A DNA stretch of 64,000 bases. Source: Guillardia theta CCMP2712. Its lineage: Eukaryota; Protista; Cryptophyta. The translations under genes and the position numbers were made by a program. This document shows, piece after piece, positions 1,737-28,970 of this stretch. The notes under the pieces were generated by a model that was not told where the DNA came from, did no database searches, and was given only the letters and a program-made list of their open reading frames with translations. The DNA lies in NCBI RefSeq assembly GCF_000315625.1, contig NW_005434646.1, positions 270,171-334,170 on the forward strand, given 5' to 3'. The first letter of the stretch is position 1; each line of letters opens with the position of its first letter.

Positions 1737-3389
1737 ATGGAATCCGAGACTCCTTTGCTGCAGCGTGAGGAGCTTGTCAGTGCCCTGCAGCGCGATGGGC
1801 TCTGTCTGAGACATGCAAGAGAGAACTTCAAGGCAGATGAGGAGCTGGTCATGTTTGCGGTGTCTCAGAACGGCAATGCCTTAAAATTTGCATCCGAGGA
1901 ACTCAAGAAGTCCAAGGCGATAGTGACGGCTGCTGCATTGCAACACGGCCCTTCGATGCAGTACGCTTCGAAAGATCTTATCGAGGACAGGGACTTTGTT
2001 TTGGAGCTGTGTGCCAAGGTCTGCTTGCCTTTGAGGTCAAGGCTGTTGTTGGTGACATGTCGTAGGGAGCGAGCTGCCTGTCGGGGTTGGATGAGAAGAT
2101 GAAGAAAGATAAGGAGGTGGTGCTTGCGTGTATGAGTGCGAACGGATTCCAGCTGGACAACGCAGATCCAAGTCTCCAGAAAGACAAGGAGGTTGTTTTG
2201 AGAGCTGTGAAATCACATGGCAAGGCCCTTCGATTTGCGTCAGAGGAGTTGTTGAAGGACAAGGAAGTCGTCATGGCTGCTGTAAGTGAGAACGGAGACG
2301 CTCTTAAGTTTGCGAGCTCCGAGTTGAAGAACGATCGCGACGTTGTGCTGTGTGCTGTGAAGCAATCAGGGGACTCGCTCAAGCACAGCTCAGAAGAGAT
2401 GCGGAAGGATAGAGAGGTTGTGCTGGAAGCTGTGAAGAAGAGCGGGAGAGCCCTTTCGCTGGCGCCGGCTTTCAGCGACGACAAGGAGATTGTTACAATC
2501 GCAGTTCAAGCGAATGCCAAGGCGTTGAAGTTTGCCTCGAAGGACATGAAGAAGGAGAAGGACGTTGTGTACTCAGCACTGAAGTCAGAATGCTCGGCTG
2601 GCGAGGGGCTAAAGTTTGCTGACCCTGAGCTGCAAGCGGACAAGCAGCTGGTGATGGAAGCAGTGAGGGCCGATGGAGATGCGCTTCAGTTTGCGAACGC
2701 ATTGTTGAGAGGAGACAAGGATGTCGTGACAGAAGCAGTCTCAACTCGACCAGAGGCGCTGGAGTATGCGACTGACAGCCTGAAGATTGACAAGGATGTG
2801 GTCATTATGGCTGTGAAGAAGGCAGGAGACGTCCTGAAAGTGCTGCCCTCAGAGGCACAGGATAAGGAAGTGGTACTAGAAGGTAACCTCCCCTTTGATG
2901 TCGTCACTTGATGATTTTGATTTCTTACCTGATTCCTTCTTCTCTCCCCATGTCATTTGCAAATGTTGTGATGCAAAGCTGAACATTCCTTTTTTTTGCC
3001 ACCCAATCATTTGCCACACTGTGAAAAATAGCACTCAAGACATCTGGTGATGCTATCAAGTATGTCACGGAAGATTTGATCGCAGACAGAGAAGTCATAA
3101 AGCAAGCGATCATCTCAGGAGGGGAAAAGCTGCTGGGCGCTATGGTCGATAGCGTGGAAACACAGCAGATAATCGCAGAAGTGATCGAGGAAGTTGAGGT
3201 GAGTTGACGCCATTGGAAGAGGAGGGCTCACTGGCTAACTGAGTAACCTGAGTTAACCTGACCTGAACTGAGATGACCTAACCTGACTGCTAACTTGTTG
3301 ATGGAACCTGTTGTGTTGCCTCGGGACCACTTCAGGCGCAACATGAACGAAATTTCTCACCTTTGACTTCAGAGACCTGCTACGAATAG
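1737..3389 (+). CDS. DUF4116-repeat protein (multi-exon; 5' end may extend upstream)
   Basis: ORFs 1728-2102 and 2087-2911 carry tandem ~25-aa repeats 'DKEVVLxAVxxxGxALxFASxEL' typical of DUF4116. They join via a 47-nt GT-AG intron (2019-2065); further exons ~3031-3198 and 3336-3389 end AQHERNFSPLTSETCYE*. Confidence 0.85.
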
Positions 3390-3526
3390 TAGCGGCGAAA
3401 CAAGTTGTTTAAATCCAAATGATGAAACGGTATACAAGTTGATAAGGAGATAGTTGGTGTCTTGCCTGCGCGTCGAGGACGACGAAGGCATCAATGTCGA
3501 TGACTTGACATGACATGACGTTGCTG

Positions 3527-3557
3527 GAGATGAGATGAGATGAGATGAGATGAGATG
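3527..3557. repeat. (GAGAT)n microsatellite
   Basis: Direct reading: gagatgagatgagat... Confidence 0.9.
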
Positions 3558-3935
3558 AATTTTGCTGTGCCCTAGAAGCTCTATCGCAGGCTGATGTTTT
3601 GTGCACGGTCATGCATCTAGTATGCAGCTCTGCACGCGGCGGGTTGAAACTCTGGGACTGACTTGGTTTCTCAGGCGGAGAGGAGGTGCGAAGATGAGAG
3701 CGGAGGGGAGCAGGGAGATTCGAAGAGAAGGAAGGTGGAGTGAAGCAGGAGCAGATTCGCGTTAGCGTTGAAACCGTTTTTTCAAATTTTGATTGACATA
3801 GAGAGGACATGAATAACGTGAATGAGCACAACTCCCAGCTTTCAGTCCCTATGAGGGAGAAGTTTCGATACGAATGACTATCGCCTGTACTATTATCAGT
3901 CTGGCAACACAGCAGCCCGCGTCACCCCTCTCGTC

Positions 3936-6900
3936 TTACTTTGCCATCCGACAAGTTGATCTTCGGTTCTCCTCCTTCCTTCCTGCTTCTCACGTCACCC
4001 CTGCCCTCCCCAGTCTTCATGTCTTACCTCGCGCTGTTCGGTCGGTTCTCCTTGTCGTAGTACGCCTGTCAAAACTTCAACGGCTCCACTGGTCAAACAG
4101 CTAGTCTCACCCCAGCTGCAGTCGGCGAAGCAGATTTCTTGCCCAGCTGCAACAGGCTGTCATGTTAAGGGTCCAGTCGAGGCTCTGGACCTGCTCGCGG
4201 AAGGAGGAAAGCCAGGCGCCATGGCGGTTGAACTTCTCCCTCGCCATCTCCCGCTGCAGCGCCATGCGCATCATCTGCGGGCGGATCAGGCGCCCTCCCT
4301 CCCCGCCCTCATGCTCCACCTGCCCCTGCATGAGGGCGAGACGCTGATCCTCCCATGAGCTGTAGGTTCCCGCTCCGTACGCCACGCGCTGGGAGCGGGC
4401 ATAGGAGGGAAGGTACCTGAGAAGCTGATCAGATCTTGACAGGCGGTGAGAGGAGACAATAGAAGGGGAGAGGAGAGGAGGGGAGAGGAGGGCAGGGGAG
4501 AGCAGAGGAGAGGGGAGGGAGAGCAGAGGAGAGCAGAGGGAGGGAGACGAGAAGGAGAGGAAAAACCTGAGGGTTCGTGGGTTTCTTGCTAGATCTCCGT
4601 ATCTGCTCTCATCCAAGGCCATCATATCATCGAGCTCCTCCATCCTGCTCAAAGGTTGTCAACAAGAAGGACAGCAGCTGCTCCTTCTCCTCCACCTCTT
4701 GAGGTCACGAGGGCGTGCGGGGTAGAAGATCTTCTGCACGGGTGCAGAGTACTTGGACGCAGCCTTTCGGTGCCGGGCCCGTCGTTGCAACTGCGTCAAC
4801 ATCAGTGACGTCATCAAGTCTCCTTCCGCCCCGCCTCCCCCTCACCTCATGTACAGCCGAGAAAGCTTCTGCCAGGTCAGAGTGGACGCGGTTGATGGTG
4901 GCGCAGGAGGAGGCAGTGCTGATGGACGAAGTCTCCGTGGTGTCGCTCAAGTCCCCAGCCACATCCGACAAGCCGAAGCTGTCACCCGACAGCTCGTGGC
5001 CCACACTTGGCTCGCCGTCGTTGCCCTTGATCATCGACTTGAGGACCTTCTCGGCTGTCTTGACCCGAGCTGCGTCCTCGTTGAGCGAGAGCGCTTGCTG
5101 GTTGATGGCTGCCTTGACCTCCCTGAGGAACGCGAGCTTGAACGAGTACTCAGCTGAGTTCCGCTGCCTCTCCAGCGCTTTCCTCTCCTTCTTGTACGCC
5201 TCACGGCTCGACATTAGAGACGCCAGGCGCTTCTGGATGTCTGCCTTCATCTCCTTCACAAGCTTACGGACCTTCTCATGCTCCTCGGGGATCGAGACTC
5301 TCATGTTGCTGGAGGATCGGTGAGCTCGCTTGCCCTCCCCGGCCTCTTGCTCGTTGGACGCTTTCTTCCTCTTCGCCTCCTCCACGAGGTTCTCCTCCTC
5401 TCGCAGCTGCTTCTGCAGGTCTGCCAGATGGCTCAGCCTCCTCTGGTACTCCTCCTCCATCGCCTTCAGCTCCTTCTGCCGCTGCTGCTGCCCAGCATCG
5501 TCCCACCTCTCCTTCTCTTCCTGCTTGAAGATCTTCCATGGGACAGACACATGCTTCCGCGGGAGAGGCTGGATGATCTCGATCTCTTCCACCGCCTTCG
5601 CCGTACTGCATGAAGTCTTCAGCTTCGATCGGGGATTGTCCTTGCAGCGAATCAGCTCCTGCGCCACGTCCATGGGGCTTCGCTTGTCGCTGCCGGAAGG
5701 ATCGGGGAGGATGTTCAGCAAGGCAAGCACGCTCCCTCTCTCCATCCCACACCACTCGAACCGCGTGTCGGAGGCGTCAACGGCCACAGCAAAGTCCGCC
5801 CGCAGCGCCGCGGCGAACGTGCCTTCTGACATCTCGACATGGTCGTAGTCGACGTTCAGAGTGCACCGAATGCCGACAGCGGGATGGAGGGAAGGAGGTG
5901 GAGGCTGAGAATTTTTGCGGCTCTCCTCCTCTCTGATCTCTTGCTCCAGCCTCTCCACTGTCCTCGTCTTCCTCTCCTCAAGAGCAAGGATCTTCTGCTC
6001 TGTCTCCCTCTCGAGACTGCGGAGCTCCGCTTCCAGCTCGGAGCTTCTCTTTCTCAGCGCTTCTTCCTTGTTCTTCTGCAGAATCTCTTGCTCCCTCGCG
6101 AGCTCCTCCTGTATCTTTCTCTGGATCTCTGTCCTCTTGGACTCCAAGTGCTGCATCTCGTCTTCCTCCAACCTTGCAATCTGTTGCTCGAATTCTGACT
6201 TCTTCCGCTTCAAATTTTCCTGGTACTCCTTCTCCTGTGAGCTGATCGCGTTCAGATATTCCGTTTCCTTCTCTTTCATCATGTTGGACATTTTCAAGGC
6301 ATCGAAGTTCTCCTTGGCGAGATCTTCAAGCTCCTTAGCAAGGCTTGCTTCTGTAGCTTGCTTCTTGCTTCTCATCTTCTCTTCTTCCGACCTGCGAATC
6401 ATCCTTCACATCTGAGGTTGAACATCGATTCAACTTCACCTCTTGAAACTCTCGAATTCAACCTCGAGAGATCTGACGAACTCATTCAACTTCTGCTGAT
6501 GACCCTCACGGATGACCTTTCCTTCTCTTCCGTTTCCTTCACCGACTTCTCCCTCAGTTCCTTCTCCAACAGATCTCGCTTCGTCTGGAGCTCTGCCTGA
6601 AGTTTTTGTTTGACTTGCTCTTCTTCCTTCTCTGCCTCTTTCTTCAGCTCATTCCTTCGTTTCTCCATGTTCTCTTGGTGATCTTTCTCGAGCATTTTCA
6701 GCTCATTTTCTTTCCGTTCATCCGCTAATTTCTTGGCCTCCTGCAGTTCTCGCTCTTGGGTAGCCTTGAACTCACTGAGTGCCTTGGAGTGCGCTTCTCT
6801 CGCAACTTCCAACTCAACCTCCAACTCCTTCATCTTCTTTGATTTCTCCTTCTCCAGCTCAGCCGACAAGTTCGAGATCTGCTCTTCAACGGCTGTATCG

Positions 6901-8676
6901 CGAGCAGCGAGGGACTTGTCGAGGGCTTGGTTATGCTCTTTCTCGAGCAACTCTCGTTTCCTCGAGGCTTCTTCGCTGAGCTCCATCTTCATCTTCTCCT
7001 CATTCCTCGTTATCTCATCCATCATTTGCTTTCGTTTCTCGTCCAGCTCGGCAAGTTTCCTGTCTCTCTCGGCAACGACTGCACTGAGCTTCTCCTGCGC
7101 TGCCTGAATCTCTTTCTCCACATCGGAGACTTGGGAGTCCACTGACTTGAGCTTCTCAACCTCTTCCAAGTGCTTTTTCTGCATGTTACTCAACGACTCA
7201 GTGCTATCTCTGTACTCATCGTCCAGTTTCTGATTGATCTCCCTCCGTGCTCTCTCAACCTCTTCGGCGATCTCCTTCTCTCGAGATGCCTTGAGGTTGT
7301 CAATCTCTTCCATTCTTCGCTTTCTTTCCCCCGCAAGGCTCTCCTCCATCTCTTTCTGCTTCATCTCAGCGTTGCTCTGAATGTCAGCCATCGATTGCGC
7401 TCTTCTCGCTTCCAGCTCTTCGTTCAGTTTCTTCACCTCGGCCGCTTCTTTCTCCTTCATGTCGCGCTCTTGCTTCTCCCTCTCCTCTTGAATTCGTTGC
7501 CTCATCTTCTGCTCCGCATCTTGCATGTTGGTAGTGCTCTCTTCCTTGATCTTGTTCAGCTTCTCCTCTAAGATGTTCTTCTGTTGTTTCTCAAACTGTT
7601 GAATTTCAGTGTCCCGCCTTTTGGCATAGTCTGACTGCAGTTGGCTCAACTTCTGCTGCAGCTCAGCCTCATGCCTCTGCTTTTCTTCGTTCAGGCGTTT
7701 CTCCATCTCAGCCTTGAGCTGGGTCTTCATTGCTTCCTCCTCCTCCTTCATGAATTTCTGGTACTCATCGTGTGTTGCGGCAGAGAATGTCGTGTCATGT
7801 GCAGCAGCAGCTGAGCTCTGCTTCAAGTTCTTCAGGTCCTTCAGTGACTGAACTGGTTTGTCGCCCAAGTCTGCAGAAGGACGAAGAGAGTCTTTCTTGA
7901 GGGGACCAAGACCTGACATCGGCTCTGCCGAGAAACTCGATTTTTCATTCCAGAACGGGTCACTCTTGGATTTCTTTGAGTCTCCGTCCTTTTTCTTCTG
8001 TTTCTTATCCTTCTCCTTCTTGACCTTGGCCTCTTCCTTCTGCCAAACTAGACAGTCACATTTCTTTCCAACAGCGATTCAAGTAATCTGCATGAATTCG
8101 ATGAAGAATCGCACCTCGATCAGCCTGTCCTTCTCGTCCTTGAAGAGATTCCTGTAGTACTCATCGCAAGGATGGTCCCATACGCTCTCACCGGTCGCAA
8201 AGTTGAAGTAGTAGATCTACCATCGCGATTCATCAGCTTCACCTCATCCCAAAACTCTCTCGTCAACCTCGTCATCCCCGGTTTTGCATGGTTTCCAATT
8301 CTCGGGCAGGGGAGCTTTGAGACCTTCCCTGGCGATCCAGAAGAGAGCCTTGTCTTCATCAGGATCCATACCGAGCCATTTAGCATATCTGAACTGAAGT
8401 CAACAAGACAAAGAAACCACATCGAAACAAGTGGCATACTCGAGAATTTCATCCTCCGTAGGCTCGTAGTCTTCCGGGAGCTCCTCTTCAAGAACAACGC
8501 TCTCTGTGGTTTGAGCATGGCTGTCGCTGTCATACTGTCCGTCGAACATCAGATCCTCTTGAATCATCTGCGCAGATCGCTCAAGGGCCCCCATCAGGCC
8601 TTGGTTGCCAAATCTGGATAATCACAAGGTTATCGACTGATACTCGCATGGTGCAAGCGCTGGCTTACCTGCTCAT
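3936..8676 (-). CDS. CEP164: CEP164-like centriolar distal appendage protein (N-terminal WW region plus long coiled coil)
   Basis: Spliced N-terminus [24 protein letters not shown]...[74 protein letters not shown] matches the CEP164 N-terminal/WW signature. It is followed by E/K-rich coiled-coil ORFs 6486-7919 and 4705-6402. 3' exons are approximate. Confidence 0.8.
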
Positions 8677-14101: not shown

Positions 14102-15336
14102 CTATGTTGCAGATTCTGATTGCCCTGAACCTGTCTTTTCATCATGGATGGCTGCAACCATGATGCCATAAAGTTTTTCGACCTCATCTGGACTGAATGA
14201 AGGGATCTGAATGATCTCAACCATGTCTTCCAGGCCTTTGCGTTTGATATGCCAAGATAGACGAGCAACAAACACATTCAACTCCTCTTGCACACGCTGA
14301 ACTCGCTCTTTATCTGTATGCAGCTCGGTATCGTCCAGAGCATTCCAAACGAGGATTCCGATAGGAGTGGGTAGATCAAAGTATCCATCTCTTGTCGATC
14401 CCTCGAACAATTCTAGGTGCGAAGGGTCCATGATGATGGTTCGAGCTGGAAGATACCTGTAATTCCCCAGATCTCCCGACGCCTGTAGAGTGGAATCGAT
14501 GGCAAAATTTCTCTTCTTCAGTTCCATGGCAAATTGTGCTACCTCGCTAAGACTGCGGTTTGCGCAAGATGAATCAACGTTGAGCTTTCGAGGTACAAAC
14601 ACTGTCAGTCTGGGAGTTTCCAGTTGGCAGTTGAAAATTTCTTTCTGAGCCCGTTTGACTTCCAGAGGGATAGGGTTGGGTAAGCGGGATTGATAATCCT
14701 TCAGCATTTGCGAGACAAATGCAACAAAGTTGTAGAAATACCCATCAGCCAGCCCCATCGCGGTGGATCGCTCTAGCTCGGCGATCCGTTTCTCGAGCTT
14801 TGGAACTTCATCTTCAGGGTTGGGCACGAAAAAAAGAGCTCGATACATCCAGTAGACAATCCCAGCCTCGAAAAGAGGATTCCCGAACTGCCCTGGCCAG
14901 TCTTCGACGTACGGCCATGAGAGGCCGAGGCCTGCGCCAATGAAGGCATACAGCAAGAGGTTCTCGGCCCGGAGCAAAATCTCCAGCTGAAAGCCGTGGG
15001 TAACGAGATCTTGGACCAGCTTGACCAAGGGCAGGAAGCTGTGTTGAATAGAATAGAGCCGAAGATACAAGTGGGGTCGGCCTGACTTTCTGGGTTGTTC
15101 AGGAAGATCAGGACAGAGCCAAGGGAAACAGTAAGAACCAGGAAGGCATACTCGACCAGAAGCTTGGGATTCTGCTGCAGCAAGGACAGTTGGGGTCTTA
15201 CGGATGGAAACGACACCCGGACGTAATCTTCTTCATCTTGGAGGATTTCTGGGATCCAGAAGGCGTTTGCATTCGAAGGAGTGACTTGCTGGGGCTTCAG
15301 CAATCGTCCAAACAGCGAAAGGAATTGATACATCAT
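14102..15336 (-). CDS. Transmembrane protein with bacterial-type STING cyclic-dinucleotide-binding domain (blSTING-like)
   Basis: The C-terminal ~220 aa show STAMGLADGYFYNFV (cf. bacterial STING PSTxLAxGYFxNFV and human VAHGLAWSYYIGYL), RLTVFVPRKL, YFDLPTPI (DxPT motif) and QEELNVFVARL, in the STING order. About 4 hydrophobic segments lie N-terminal. There is a 48-nt intron near 15177-15224 and a frame change near 15038. Confidence 0.8.
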
Positions 15337-23939: not shown

Positions 23940-26900
23940 TTACTTTGAAGAAAGTCGGCGTTTTAGAAGGTAGCAACCATGACGCTTGGAAAGGTACCAA
24001 ACCTTCACCGATCCATCTGTTGAACCTGAGGCAAGCTGCTCCCCATCCGGCCCCCAGCTCACGCTCTTCACGCCTCCATCTAGCCCTCTGAGTACCTGAC
24101 AGCACCTTCCAGTCTCAGTCTCCACCTCCCATACTCGCACTGTCTCGTCGTATGAACCTGTCGCTAGCAACTTCCCGTCCGGCCTCCAGCTCACGCTCTC
24201 TACCCAGCCTTCATGACCCCTGAGCACTTGACAGCAAGACCCAGTCGCTACCTCCCATACACGTGCTGTCCTATCCCATGCTCCGGTGGCTAGCATCTTC
24301 CCGTCAGGCCTCCAGCTCAAGGTCTCGACACAGCCCTCGTGCCCTACGAGCACCTGACAGCAAGACCCAGTCGCTACCTCCCAGATTCGCACTGTCTCGT
24401 CGTAGGACCCAGAGGCTAGCATGTTCCCGTCAGGCCCCCAGCTCACGCTCTCGACGCACTTCGAATGTCCAGCGAGCACCTGGCAGCAAGACCCAGTCGC
24501 TACCTCCCAGACCCGCACTGTCTCGTCGTGGGACCCAGAGGCCAGCATCGTCCCGTCAGGCCTCCAGCTCACTTCCTCGACCAAATCGTCATGTCCCATC
24601 AGCTCCACAAAGAGACTTTTAGTCCCCACATCTCTGAGCATGACTGATCCCTCCCCGTCCACACATGCCAGAGCCTTCTTGCCGTCAGGCCTCCAGGCCA
24701 AACTTCTGATCCATCCCTCCTCAGCCGTGAACGCAATGACCTGACGGCATTCTCCTGTCTCTACCTCCCACACCCGGACAGTGTTGTTCAGGGACAGGCA
24801 TGCGAGCATCTTTCCATCCTGCCTCCACCTCAACTCGGACACAGGGTCCTTGCGTCCTACCAATCTTTCGATTCGATCTCCAACATCGATTTCCATCTTA
24901 CAGCTCGCTTCGTCTTCGCCCAAAGACAAGTTCTCCATCTCTGCGATGAGCGAATCGATGGAGATAGCTTCCTCCTGACCAACCTCAAAACTCTCTCCAT
25001 TCTCACCCGAGCCGGAGGACAACAAGCTTCCGTTCTCCCCCACAAGGTTTTGTGCTCCTTCACCTGCTACTCCATCGAAACATGCCTCTTCAAAATACCC
25101 TGAAGTGAGGATCGCGCCCGAAAGATCCGCTCCCGCAAAGTTGGTCTTGTGAAAGATTCCGTCCCGCAGCACTGCTCCTGGTATCCGGACGCCATGAAGG
25201 TCGAGCCCAGAGAATGACACACCAGCTGCAACAAGGACGGAGGCTGCGTTCGCCGATGCTGCGACGACATCCGGCGCTATCTCTGGAGCTCTCGAAACGT
25301 GTATGAGGCTGAACAACCTGTCTTGGTAGTCGGGATTGCCCCTCACAAGCTCTGCCAGCTCCGCGATGATCTCCGGCTCCTCCCTCAGGTTGCGGAGGCT
25401 CAAACCTATCGGCACTGAGCCTTCGACCTTCAAGTTCGCAAGTATGGAGTCCACGAGAAAGAAAGTTCTGAATGTCTCGTCCACAAAGGTTATCTCCAAG
25501 GACTCCGACAGAGTTTCATTTGAAAGTTGCCGTTTCAGGCAGGTAAGACAACCTCTCAGCAGCCAGTAACCCAATTCGCCTTCCAGGCTCCCAGTTCTGT
25601 TGGTGGGAATGTGAAAGGGGGCCCCGGCAAAAAAATCATCGTTGGGTCTCAGGCAGAGTTTGTCTGAGTGAAGCTGATGCATTCTTATGCACAAAGCACG
25701 AGCGGCAGTACAGTACCATTCAATGCAGTTCTCATCATTGATGCCGACTCCGTTCCTTTTCATCTCTAGATTCGGCGTTCTGACAAGTTTGCGCCATTCC
25801 AGCTCAAAGCGTTCGTGGACGTATTCGTTGTAAATGTCATGCCGCGTTATCCGAAAGTCAGAATCGTCGGGTCTGTGCAGTCTCGGGAGCATTTCAAGGG
25901 TCACCTTGAGGCAAAATGGAGTCTTTACCATGCGATTGAGAACAGGAATAGTTTCCAGTGCTTCTTCGTATTGCTCTTTCGTCCATCCGCCTTCATCCTG
26001 AATTGTTGACAAGTGATAATCGACGTACCGGCTCACATGCTCCTTATCTGAAAGATCCAAGGGACACAGCCAAATGACTTGTAAGCTGTCTTTCGCAGTC
26101 TCTGGCAACCGAAAAAGCCTATGAGAGGTTCCGTCGCTCCTCAGGTAGTCACTGCGACAAGTGATCAAGGCTTTGAGACTCCTACACCCATGTAGTTCAC
26201 GGGAGATTTTTTCAACAACATTTTTCTTGATACCCATCTCATCATAGCCATCCAACACAACAAAGAAGGCCTTATTGTGAACGAATCTTTCCCTGTCCTC
26301 AACACTCAACTCTTGTCCTATAGCTTTCTGCAAATACATTTCGATGCTAACAAAAGTTGGAAGGTATATGAAGATGGGGTATAGCTTTCCGACCTCCCAG
26401 TTGTCTCCGATCTCGATCGCCCATTTTTTGCCAATGGTAGACTTTCCAGCACCAGCCTGGCCTTGCACCAGCAACACATGCTTGCGGCGATCCTCTAAGA
26501 ATCGCTGCACCACTGGGCTGCAGGGTACCTTTTCAATCGAGCCACTGACGTCGGGGTTCGTGTCAGAGCAATAGTTCTCCAGGTAGCTTTCCGAGGCATC
26601 TTGCTTGCTGTACTCCTGCGTCTCCTCCATGATGATTTTTCGCATCTTCCTCGGAAGCATGTTGCACAGGTACTCCACGTTCTTGTCCTTCGGTACCTCC
26701 CCGGTGGTCGGATCCATCTTTCCAACAAAGTCGTACGCATGGCTGTGACACCATGCATTGATGATCATGTTGGCCTTGGGGGGAGCAAAAGGTCTGGCCT
26801 GCGCAGTCACACAGTGGATGGACACTTGCGAGCTCTTCTCAAGCTTCTGTATCAGGCTGAAATCTTCCACGAAGAAGTCAATCGAATCAGCCACAGCGCT

Positions 26901-27266
26901 CTCTAGAGTCCCATCGAGTCGACCGTGCACTCCAGTGTTGATATGGATGGCTTGCTCGCGTTTGAGCATCTCCCCTATCACCAGCTCTACATCCTCTGCC
27001 GCCACCTCCAGGTCCGTTTCCCACAGTATCTGATCGCCTCGTTCAGGCCCATGAACGGAAGGGAGCGTTCGAGCAAAGAAGCGACAACTGGGATGATCCT
27101 TGAGGATGAAGAACCCACTGGAACCTCGGGGAGAAGGTTCAAGGCCCAGTGCAACAACGTCTCCTCTCGAGTTCAAGTTGAACCAGCGGCCTGGCTTCAA
27201 CGAATCACTACCGACGACTCGACTAGGAGATAAGGGCTGTCGAGCCGGGTCGTTTAGTTGGGACAT
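23940..27266 (-). CDS. Intronless NLR-like STAND protein: putative caspase-like N-terminal domain + NACHT + pentapeptide + WD40 repeats
   Basis: 1108-aa single ORF. Walker A GQAGAGKST, Walker B FFVVLDGYDE, LITCRSDYL, pentapeptide FSGLDLHGVRIPGAVLRDG..FAGADLSGAIL, ~7 WD40 repeats (GH..VxSVSWRPDG.LASGS.D.TVRVWEV). Confidence 0.9.
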   Translation of the reverse strand: MSQLNDPARQPLSPSRVVGSDSLKPGRWFNLNSRGDVVALGLEPSPRGSSGFFILKDHPSCRFFARTLPSVHGPERGDQILWETDLEVAAEDVELVIGEMLKREQAIHINTGVHGRLDGTLESAVADSIDFFVEDFSLIQKLEKSSQVSIHCVTAQARPFAPPKANMIINAWCHSHAYDFVGKMDPTTGEVPKDKNVEYLCNMLPRKMRKIIMEETQEYSKQDASESYLENYCSDTNPDVSGSIEKVPCSPVVQRFLEDRRKHVLLVQGQAGAGKSTIGKKWAIEIGDNWEVGKLYPIFIYLPTFVSIEMYLQKAIGQELSVEDRERFVHNKAFFVVLDGYDEMGIKKNVVEKISRELHGCRSLKALITCRSDYLRSDGTSHRLFRLPETAKDSLQVIWLCPLDLSDKEHVSRYVDYHLSTIQDEGGWTKEQYEEALETIPVLNRMVKTPFCLKVTLEMLPRLHRPDDSDFRITRHDIYNEYVHERFELEWRKLVRTPNLEMKRNGVGINDENCIEWYCTAARALCIRMHQLHSDKLCLRPNDDFFAGAPFHIPTNRTGSLEGELGYWLLRGCLTCLKRQLSNETLSESLEITFVDETFRTFFLVDSILANLKVEGSVPIGLSLRNLREEPEIIAELAELVRGNPDYQDRLFSLIHVSRAPEIAPDVVAASANAASVLVAAGVSFSGLDLHGVRIPGAVLRDGIFHKTNFAGADLSGAILTSGYFEEACFDGVAGEGAQNLVGENGSLLSSGSGENGESFEVGQEEAISIDSLIAEMENLSLGEDEASCKMEIDVGDRIERLVGRKDPVSELRWRQDGKMLACLSLNNTVRVWEVETGECRQVIAFTAEEGWIRSLAWRPDGKKALACVDGEGSVMLRDVGTKSLFVELMGHDDLVEEVSWRPDGTMLASGSHDETVRVWEVATGSCCQVLAGHSKCVESVSWGPDGNMLASGSYDETVRIWEVATGSCCQVLVGHEGCVETLSWRPDGKMLATGAWDRTARVWEVATGSCCQVLRGHEGWVESVSWRPDGKLLATGSYDETVRVWEVETETGRCCQVLRGLDGGVKSVSWGPDGEQLASGSTDGSVKVWYLSKRHGCYLLKRRLSSK

Positions 27267-27443: not shown

Positions 27444-27515
27444 GGGGGATTCCGGGGATCGAACCCGGGACCTCTCGCACCCAAAGCGAGAATCATACCG
27501 CTAGACCAAATCCCC
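27444..27515 (-). tRNA. tRNA-Pro (anticodon TGG)
   Basis: Reverse complement GGGGATTTGGTCTAGCGGTATGATTCTCGCTTTGGGTGCGAGAGGTCCCGGGTTCGATCCCCGGAATCCCCC folds as a cloverleaf with GTTCGA T-loop and CTCGC/GCGAG anticodon stem; a T-run terminator follows ~20 nt downstream. Confidence 0.97.
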
Positions 27516-27907: not shown

Positions 27908-28970
27908 ATGCTTGGCCGTCAAATGAATGGCTACAGAACTCTCGGATTTGTGCATCAGCTCACAACAGTCTACTTTCTGAATAGAGATTACGGCATGGTC
28001 CAGTCATGCGTGAAACCGAACAGACACTTCACTTTGGATGCAGCGCCTAAATGGAGAAGGCAGAAACATGGCAGAGTCGAGCCAGACGCTGGTAAACATG
28101 GACCCGACGGTCAAATGACGTCTTTGCAACAAGCTCTTGGTGTCAAATTCAAGGACATTACCATTCTTAGGCAAGCACTGCTGCATCCCTCAATCACAGC
28201 GAGCCGTTTGGAGAGCAACCAGCGTCTGGAATTTTTGGGCGACGCAGTGTTAGGATGTGTAGTGGCAGAGAAGCTTTACGAGGAACGCAAGGGTTTGAAC
28301 GAAGGAGAACTAACATTAGCGCGTCAAAACTTAGTTTCAACTGCTGCACTTGCGGAGATAGCACTGGAGCAGGGTTATGATAAGCTCCTTTTCATGAGTT
28401 TCCAGGAAGAAGGTTACGGGGGAAGGGGCAATGTCAAGATTCTTGCAGATACGGTCGAGGCAGTCATCGGAGCAGTTTTTGTAGACCAGGGTTATCAATG
28501 CGCACAAATGGTCATCGAGAGGCTATATAAAACCAAATTTGCAAAGATGGAAACGTCTACAATTCTTACCATGGATCCGATATCTTCCGTCATGAACTTC
28601 TCGAAGCAGCTAGGACTTGAACCATGTTACAAAGTCGTCAAAGAAGGCAATCTTATTCGAATTTTGTGCGAAGTCTTGAGGTACTCATTCCCTTGGCAGG
28701 CGTCGAACATGCACCAAAGTTCACGGTTCATCTGTCCTTAAATGGCCACCCTCTTGGCTGGGGGACTGGCCGGAGCTCCAAGGATGCAAAATATGTAACG
28801 AATTTCTAGAGCCAAGTGAACTTGCTCATGATGTACAGGCGGCGTCACAGTATGCTCTTAAGCTGCTGGAGTCGAAGACAAAGCAGGAAATCGAAGCCAT
28901 CAAGGTTCTTGGATTTGACGTTCTGACCAACACAGAACCTGACATTCTAGTAGAAGCCGAGAAACTGACC
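27908..28970 (+). CDS. rnc: Bacterial-type ribonuclease III (RNase III domain + dsRBD), possibly organelle-targeted
   Basis: QALLHPS, SNQRLEFLGDAVLG signature, ILADTVEAVIGAVFVDQG; dsRBD exons (HAPKFTVHL..GTGRSSKDA..AASQYAL); ~70-aa basic N-terminal extension. 3' end approximate. Confidence 0.9.

Follow-up and report, generated by a model that had tools for sequence, protein, structure and literature searches.

A predicted Tox-HDC thiol-enzyme domain on an NLR-like receptor family of the cryptophyte Guillardia theta

Introduction

Receptors that resemble the nucleotide-binding, leucine-rich repeat receptors (NLRs) are known in animals, plants, fungi and bacteria, and little is known of them in algae with secondary plastids. 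The stretch of DNA analysed here, a window of 64,000 bp on contig NW_005434646.1 of the cryptophyte Guillardia theta CCMP2712, contains a long gene with the architecture of such a receptor, in which a small N-terminal domain precedes a NACHT-type STAND NTPase and a WD40 propeller, raising the question as to what this N-terminal domain is and what the protein might do with it. A reading of the sequence alone (the original prediction) had proposed a caspase-like protease of clan CD, possibly undescribed, on a single-chain sensor comparable to the apoptosome or inflammasome. We find instead that the domain is, by transitive sequence homology, a divergent member of the Tox-HDC family (PF15656) of predicted thiol enzymes, and that it heads the products of at least 11 genes. 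On balance we lean towards the view that the protein is an NLR-like STAND receptor whose Tox-HDC tip is a thiol enzyme, most likely a peptidase or isopeptidase, that would be switched on by oligomerisation.

Results

The Tox-HDC family was defined by Zhang, de Souza, Anantharaman, Iyer and Aravind in 2012 (PMC3482391) on the basis of three motifs, namely [SGxH], a conserved D/N and a C that is absolutely conserved. Its members were predicted to adopt a three-layer alpha/beta fold of the Rossmannoid type, in which the catalytic residues lie at the ends of strands, a fold which these authors thought might resemble that of the caspases, and to be either thiol peptidases or transglutaminases, the two being given as equal alternatives. 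The authors found members both as tips of RHS-type polymorphic toxins and among pathogens, including Coxiella, Xenorhabdus and Photorhabdus (PMC3482391).

Comparison of the N-terminal domain with 1.84 billion representative proteins by phmmer yields 51 matches. The closest proteins in public libraries are those of the cryptophyte Hanusia phi (EukProt), some of them near-identical to Guillardia paralogues, and the matches besides these are mostly metagenome proteins of 220-350 aa together with some long multi-domain ones. Free-standing relatives are present in bacteria that are likely intracellular, among them one represented by a metagenome-assembled genome (MAG) of the Simkaniaceae. The domain matches two proteins, P0008 and P0009, at expect values (E) of 5.7e-13 and 4.7e-12 respectively, and both of these, along with P0013, exceed the Pfam cut-off for Tox-HDC (21.7 bits for P0008 and 25 bits for P0009, against a cut-off of 21). 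A Pfam scan of an alignment of 54 homologues from cryptophytes and bacteria shows that 29 match PF15656 (best E 1.1e-7), and no other family is recurrent. Closer to the query, the Guillardia paralogue L016 matches the model directly (E 6.9e-4, 20.3 bits), and PF15656 is part of the precomputed annotation of the Hanusia orthologue P0054. Through these intermediates the domain is placed as a divergent Tox-HDC member, and the suggestion that it might be undescribed falls away. The conserved region starts about 60 residues N-terminal of the 130-position Pfam model, the extra part being the beta-rich segment of aa 17-83. Searching the whole genome in six frames with the Tox-HDC model gave no match, but as the controls likewise gave none this search is uninformative, and phmmer of the domain against PDB sequences also gave no match.

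All of the motifs by which the family was defined are present in the query, as TGVH (T111-G112-V-H114), FFVED (D135) and AWC (C173), with the published D/N having two candidate positions, D135 and residue 170. The two motifs named in the original prediction, IHINTGVHG with His114 and MIINAWCHS with Cys173, lie exactly where it had placed them, 59 codons apart, and each does follow a beta-strand (residues 107-111 and 167-170 in the AlphaFold model). The proposed check on their conservation also comes out in its favour, with H114 and C173 each kept in 52 of the 54 homologues; N110 is kept in all 54, D135 in 53, Gly112 in 52 and H151 in 44, and position 170 alternates between N (29) and D (23). 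The exceptions at C173 are one truncated row and a Ser in P0012, a metagenome protein of 480 aa with Tox-HDC and TPR repeats. Since P0012 has changed its His to Gln and its Cys to Ser together, a functional pair is suggested, and this protein is probably an inactive member of the family and a natural control.

Is the domain then a caspase by fold, if not by sequence family? A model of the domain made with AlphaFold 2 (AF2) from the 54-sequence alignment has a predicted local distance difference test (pLDDT) score of 92.5 and a predicted template-modelling (pTM) score of 0.88, and a second AF2 model has a pLDDT of 88.1; both are beta-alpha-beta sandwiches. The core consists, in order, of strand 79-83, helix 90-102, strand 107-111, helix 128-140, strand 148-152, strand 167-170 and helix 175-183, with a small beta-rich part ahead of it. 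H114 and C173 are each 2-3 residues beyond strand ends, and the Cys motif, which reads small-x-Cys-x-small, is positioned between strand and helix. A specifically caspase-like fold is not recovered: Foldseek against the PDB returned nothing at E <=0.001, the best rows being isopropylmalate/isocitrate dehydrogenases and phosphotransacetylases, a shape search of the ESM Atlas gave template-modelling (TM) scores below 0.5 throughout, and in neither of these structure searches nor at the level of sequence profiles was there a match to clan CD. The models thus indicate for the Tox-HDC tip the Rossmann-like alpha/beta sandwich that had been predicted in 2012, without a close solved relative, and not specifically the caspase-hemoglobinase fold. 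The presence of HG...C in an alpha/beta domain does not suffice for calling a caspase, and a tempting mis-annotation is corrected.

Several other folds were considered and dropped. The best rows of the ESM Atlas shape search, clusters that are dual-specificity phosphatase-like (TM 0.41 and 0.48), do not apply because the CX5R arginine is absent, and the terminase-like clusters of its feature search (scores <=0.78) are noise. Papain-like, LRAT-like and sortase-like His/Cys folds were set aside because the models show a Rossmann-like beta-alpha-beta arrangement, and the search lists contain none of these folds.

The gene itself is one uninterrupted frame with just two in-frame codons between the upstream stop and the first ATG, and encodes, from N- to C-terminus, the Tox-HDC domain, a NACHT-type STAND NTPase, pentapeptide repeats, an acidic linker and a single WD40 propeller (Table 1), so that the predicted NACHT and WD40 parts downstream of the N-terminal domain are both found. 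In Pfam the NTPase matches NPHP3_N at 27.2 bits, above the cut-off of 24.8, and NACHT at 20.8 bits, below the cut-off of 26.7, which homologues do pass. Its Walker A (GQAGAGKS, aa 269-276) and Walker B (FVVLDGYDE, aa 335-343) both fit the patterns of NACHT-clade STAND proteins, GxxxxGK[ST] and hhhhD[GAS]xDE. Within the WD40 region there are 3.6 tandem units of 126 nt with 80% nucleotide identity (24116-24572).

Table 1. Coordinates in the window of the receptor gene and its parts
Feature	Position	Strand	Description and basis
Whole gene	23940..27266	-	Tox-HDC + NACHT + pentapeptide + WD40, 1108 aa; open reading frame and Pfam
Tox-HDC domain, aa 17-190	26697..27218	-	phmmer, Pfam on homologues, AF2 (pLDDT 92.5)
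His motif IHINTGVHG, aa 107-115	26922..26948	-	H108, N110, T111, G112, H114 (26925-26927), G115; the [SGxH] motif of Tox-HDC
Asp135 (FFVED)	26862..26864	-	Likely the D of the H-D-C signature; conservation
Cys motif MIINAWCHS, aa 167-175	26742..26768	-	N/D170, W172, C173 (26748-26750), S175
NACHT-type P-loop NTPase core, aa 264-377	26136..26477	-	Walker A GQAGAGKS 26439-26462; Walker B FVVLDGYDE 26238-26264
Pentapeptide repeats, aa 705-733	25068..25154	-	PF00805, 27 bits, above cut-off
WD40 beta-propeller, aa 805-1096	23979..24854	-	PF00400, 205 bits over 6 stretches

The receptor gene does not stand alone. Across the Guillardia genome (87.1 Mb, 669 contigs) the N-terminal domain is found at 14 places, in 11 of which, including the query, it lies in a long uninterrupted frame. 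The ten other intact paralogues (L015-L024) encode 709-2106 aa in uninterrupted frames of 2.1-6.3 kb, with a GC content of 0.46-0.61, and all ten have the same order of N-terminal domain, NACHT, often pentapeptide repeats, and one to several WD40 propellers; the genome in which these uninterrupted frames lie is intron-rich. Although the 11 intact domains are just 38-49% identical to the query, H108, N110, T111, H114, G115, E134, D135, S149, H151, N166, N170, W172, C173 and S175 are invariant among them, and the invariance of H114, G115, C173 and S175 at this level of overall identity argues that the motifs are not due to chance. There are also decaying copies, one (L012/L013, contig C44 at about 476715-477202) split over two reading frames near aa 134 and another (L014, C90:38048-38188) a short fragment. 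The paralogue L022 (C118:108500-117500; frame 3033-8072 on the minus strand) has about 660 aa ahead of its Tox-HDC domain, for which no Pfam match is reported.

The 16 cryptophyte sequences group as a single clade in the domain tree, with full support in the Shimodaira-Hasegawa-like approximate likelihood ratio test (SH-aLRT 100), and Guillardia/Hanusia pairs are nested within this clade, so that the expansion is older than the split of these two algae. The deep forks of the tree, on which the choice of a sister group for the cryptophyte clade depends, are unsupported. The names of the Hanusia homologues look transcript-derived, which is the sole and indirect hint of expression. Taken together, the shared architecture, variable length, near-identical WD40 units, decaying copies and single cryptophyte clade are consistent with receptor-like evolution.

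Pairing of Tox-HDC with a STAND switch is not restricted to cryptophytes. Among the homologues it is N-terminal to NACHT in P0022, to NB-ARC and TPR in P0027, which is on a bacterial contig with Fic, helix-turn-helix and group II intron maturase genes, to NACHT and HEAT in P0029, and to NACHT and ankyrin repeats in P0036, which adjoins IS66. The STAND modules of these four proteins give no match to the NACHT region of the alga up to E 10. The nearest non-cryptophyte kin of the NACHT-pentapeptide-WD40 chassis are instead in MAGs of Tatlockia (Legionellales), in Mortierellaceae fungi and in their Mycoavidus-type endosymbionts; Tox-HDC is absent from these chassis kin, which in the precomputed Pfam lists carry other families, for example a protein kinase or metallophosphoesterase. 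Because Tox-HDC is joined to unrelated STAND modules, and because the kin of the chassis are without it, we conclude that the pairing arose several times by domain shuffling, and such repeated pairing with STAND switches is the pattern of NLR-like effector domains and fits an effector role.

The chassis (P0055-P0087) is common to Mortierellaceae, Mycoavidus-type endosymbionts, Tatlockia MAGs and cryptophytes, a spread which suggests gene transfer between intracellular bacteria and their eukaryotic hosts. PADLOC has no model matching either the Tox-HDC or the NACHT parts, and neither Kaur et al. 2020 nor the 2026 Nature survey of bacterial STAND receptors makes mention of Tox-HDC. While the family and the NLR-like architecture are each known, the combination of Tox-HDC with STAND is in no paper found in the literature searched.

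Some neighbouring features of the window are also of note. A tRNA-Pro gene (anticodon UGG; 27444-27515, minus strand) is 178 bp upstream of the receptor start codon on the same strand, leaving very little space for a promoter. A 277-aa open reading frame (27908-28741, plus strand), divergent from the receptor gene, clearly encodes an RNase III domain (Ribonucleas_3_3, E 1.4e-31). About 9 kb off the receptor gene, a 322-aa frame (14102-15070, minus strand) has a weak match to prokaryotic STING (PF20300, E 2.9e-4, 21.3 bits, below the cut-off of 27.1); if this match is real, two bacterial-flavoured genes of immune type are in close proximity.

Discussion

How might such a protein work? The domain architecture, the expansion into paralogues and the similarity of the repeats lead us to infer a ligand-triggered immune receptor of the NLR type. 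A trigger would be bound by the WD40 propeller, perhaps together with the pentapeptide repeats, upon which the NACHT NTPase would swap its nucleotide and oligomerise, and the clustering would turn on the Tox-HDC domains. Once active, these would act as thiol hydrolases, most probably peptidases or isopeptidases, on proteins of the cell or of an invader, leading to a death or defence response.

Several observations weigh against this scheme. Residues 1-222 of the query have no direct match in Pfam, even at E 10, and in the literature searched the name Tox-HDC occurs only in the 2012 prediction paper, and PF15656 in none. The family is an enzyme by prediction only, and a profile of the 54 homologues gave just a chance match to PDB sequences (E 0.15). 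In addition, D135 is in the middle of helix 128-140 in both AF2 models and not at a strand end, so that a Cys-His-Asp triad of the classical kind cannot be taken for granted.

The chemistry of the tip is where the most serious rival lies, namely that it is a thiol enzyme other than a peptidase (a transglutaminase, glutamine deamidase, acyltransferase or similar) that is triggered by NACHT all the same. Zhang et al. 2012 (PMC3482391) placed transglutaminase on an equal footing. In general, many non-peptidase hydrolases have nucleophile elbows like the segment A171-W-C173-H-S175 between strand and helix, and the Cys-His effectors of intracellular bacteria, such as the Simkaniaceae relative probably represents, are often modifying enzymes. 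No structural neighbour with such chemistry rises above background, however, and the evidence does not separate this reading from a peptidase; we regard it as rather unlikely, though well worth keeping in view. A different objection holds that the conserved H108, H114, D135, H151 and C173 bind metal or are structural, the domain being a non-catalytic adaptor or oligomerisation module. Conservation of several His residues along with an Asp and a Cys would fit, and D135, being mid-helix, could reach across to H108 or N110 on the strand next to it in the AF2 models, but the founding members of Tox-HDC are C-terminal toxin tips and pathogen effectors, a position held by enzymes, H151 is kept in just 44 of the 54 homologues, and P0012, in which His and Cys were lost together, points to a functional pair. 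We think this very unlikely.

Least probable of the readings weighed here is the one from which the analysis departed, a true clan CD protease (caspase, metacaspase, CHAT or C80) and thus a single-chain apoptosome. Its attractions are evident: strand-x-x-HG and strand-x-x-C at a spacing of 59 residues, the effector position on a STAND NTPase, and the view of the 2012 authors on a possible resemblance to caspases (PMC3482391). The tip is like the clan CD peptidases (caspase C14, CHAT, C80 CPD, gingipain, legumain) in being an alpha/beta sandwich with HG and C each right after a hydrophobic strand, but unlike in these peptidases its His strand is separated from its Cys strand by a helix and an additional strand, and it further differs from caspases in the mid-helix location of D135. 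As a whole, then, the original prediction is partly supported, and a Tox-HDC thiol peptidase or isopeptidase on a STAND receptor is the reading that we carry forward.

Comparison with known systems shows what is familiar and what is new in the algal protein. With the Tox-HDC family (PMC3482391) it shares sequence homology, the three motifs [S/T]GxH, D and C, the predicted Rossmannoid sandwich and the status of an enzyme by prediction; the described members, however, form the C-terminal ends of polymorphic toxins that bacteria secrete (RHS, type II secretion system) or are pathogen effectors, whereas the algal domain is intracellular, lies N-terminal to a STAND NTPase on one chain and is encoded by a nuclear gene of a eukaryote. 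The fungal NACHT-WD40 NLRs (HET-E/HET-D/NWD of Podospora and relatives) have the same order of effector, NACHT and WD40, with WD40 units that are very alike, many paralogues and a variable repeat number. Their effectors are HET, PNP_UDP, patatin, amyloid motifs and others rather than Tox-HDC, and the algal chassis differs in its pentapeptide repeats between NACHT and WD40 and in its nearest kin, which are those named above and not the ascomycete NWDs.

Apaf-1 in the apoptosome and the NLRs of inflammasomes likewise join a STAND NTPase to a WD40 (or leucine-rich repeat) sensor, with a proximity-activated Cys protease as the logic of the output, although Apaf-1 recruits a separate caspase through CARD and the putative enzyme of the alga is part of the receptor chain itself and does not have a caspase fold. 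The bacterial Avs and bNACHT antiphage STANDs are also single chains of effector, STAND and repeat sensor, and the four bacterial fusions described above have Tox-HDC in the effector position; no PADLOC model fits the Tox-HDC-STAND proteins, and we know of no antiphage test of one.

The presence of Tox-HDC on four kinds of unrelated bacterial STAND switches is good comparative evidence for an activity that is both dangerous and controllable. We put forward, tentatively and as something short of probable, a broader proposal: that Tox-HDC represents a new class of cysteine enzyme, Rossmann-like in fold, lacking a solved relative and turned on by STAND NTPases, and that it was recruited independently at least four times by bacteria onto NB-ARC and NACHT switches and once by cryptophytes, in which it gave rise to about a dozen NLR-like receptors forming an intronless family, both parts of which would probably be bacterial in origin.

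For the biology of Guillardia, the finding is of a cryptophyte with at least 11 NLR-like genes whose output domain is a predicted enzyme family, and if the proposed function is correct these genes would be the first candidates for an NLR-type immune repertoire in a cryptophyte. For the family, Tox-HDC would become a cross-kingdom immune effector module comparable to the TIR or caspase domains.

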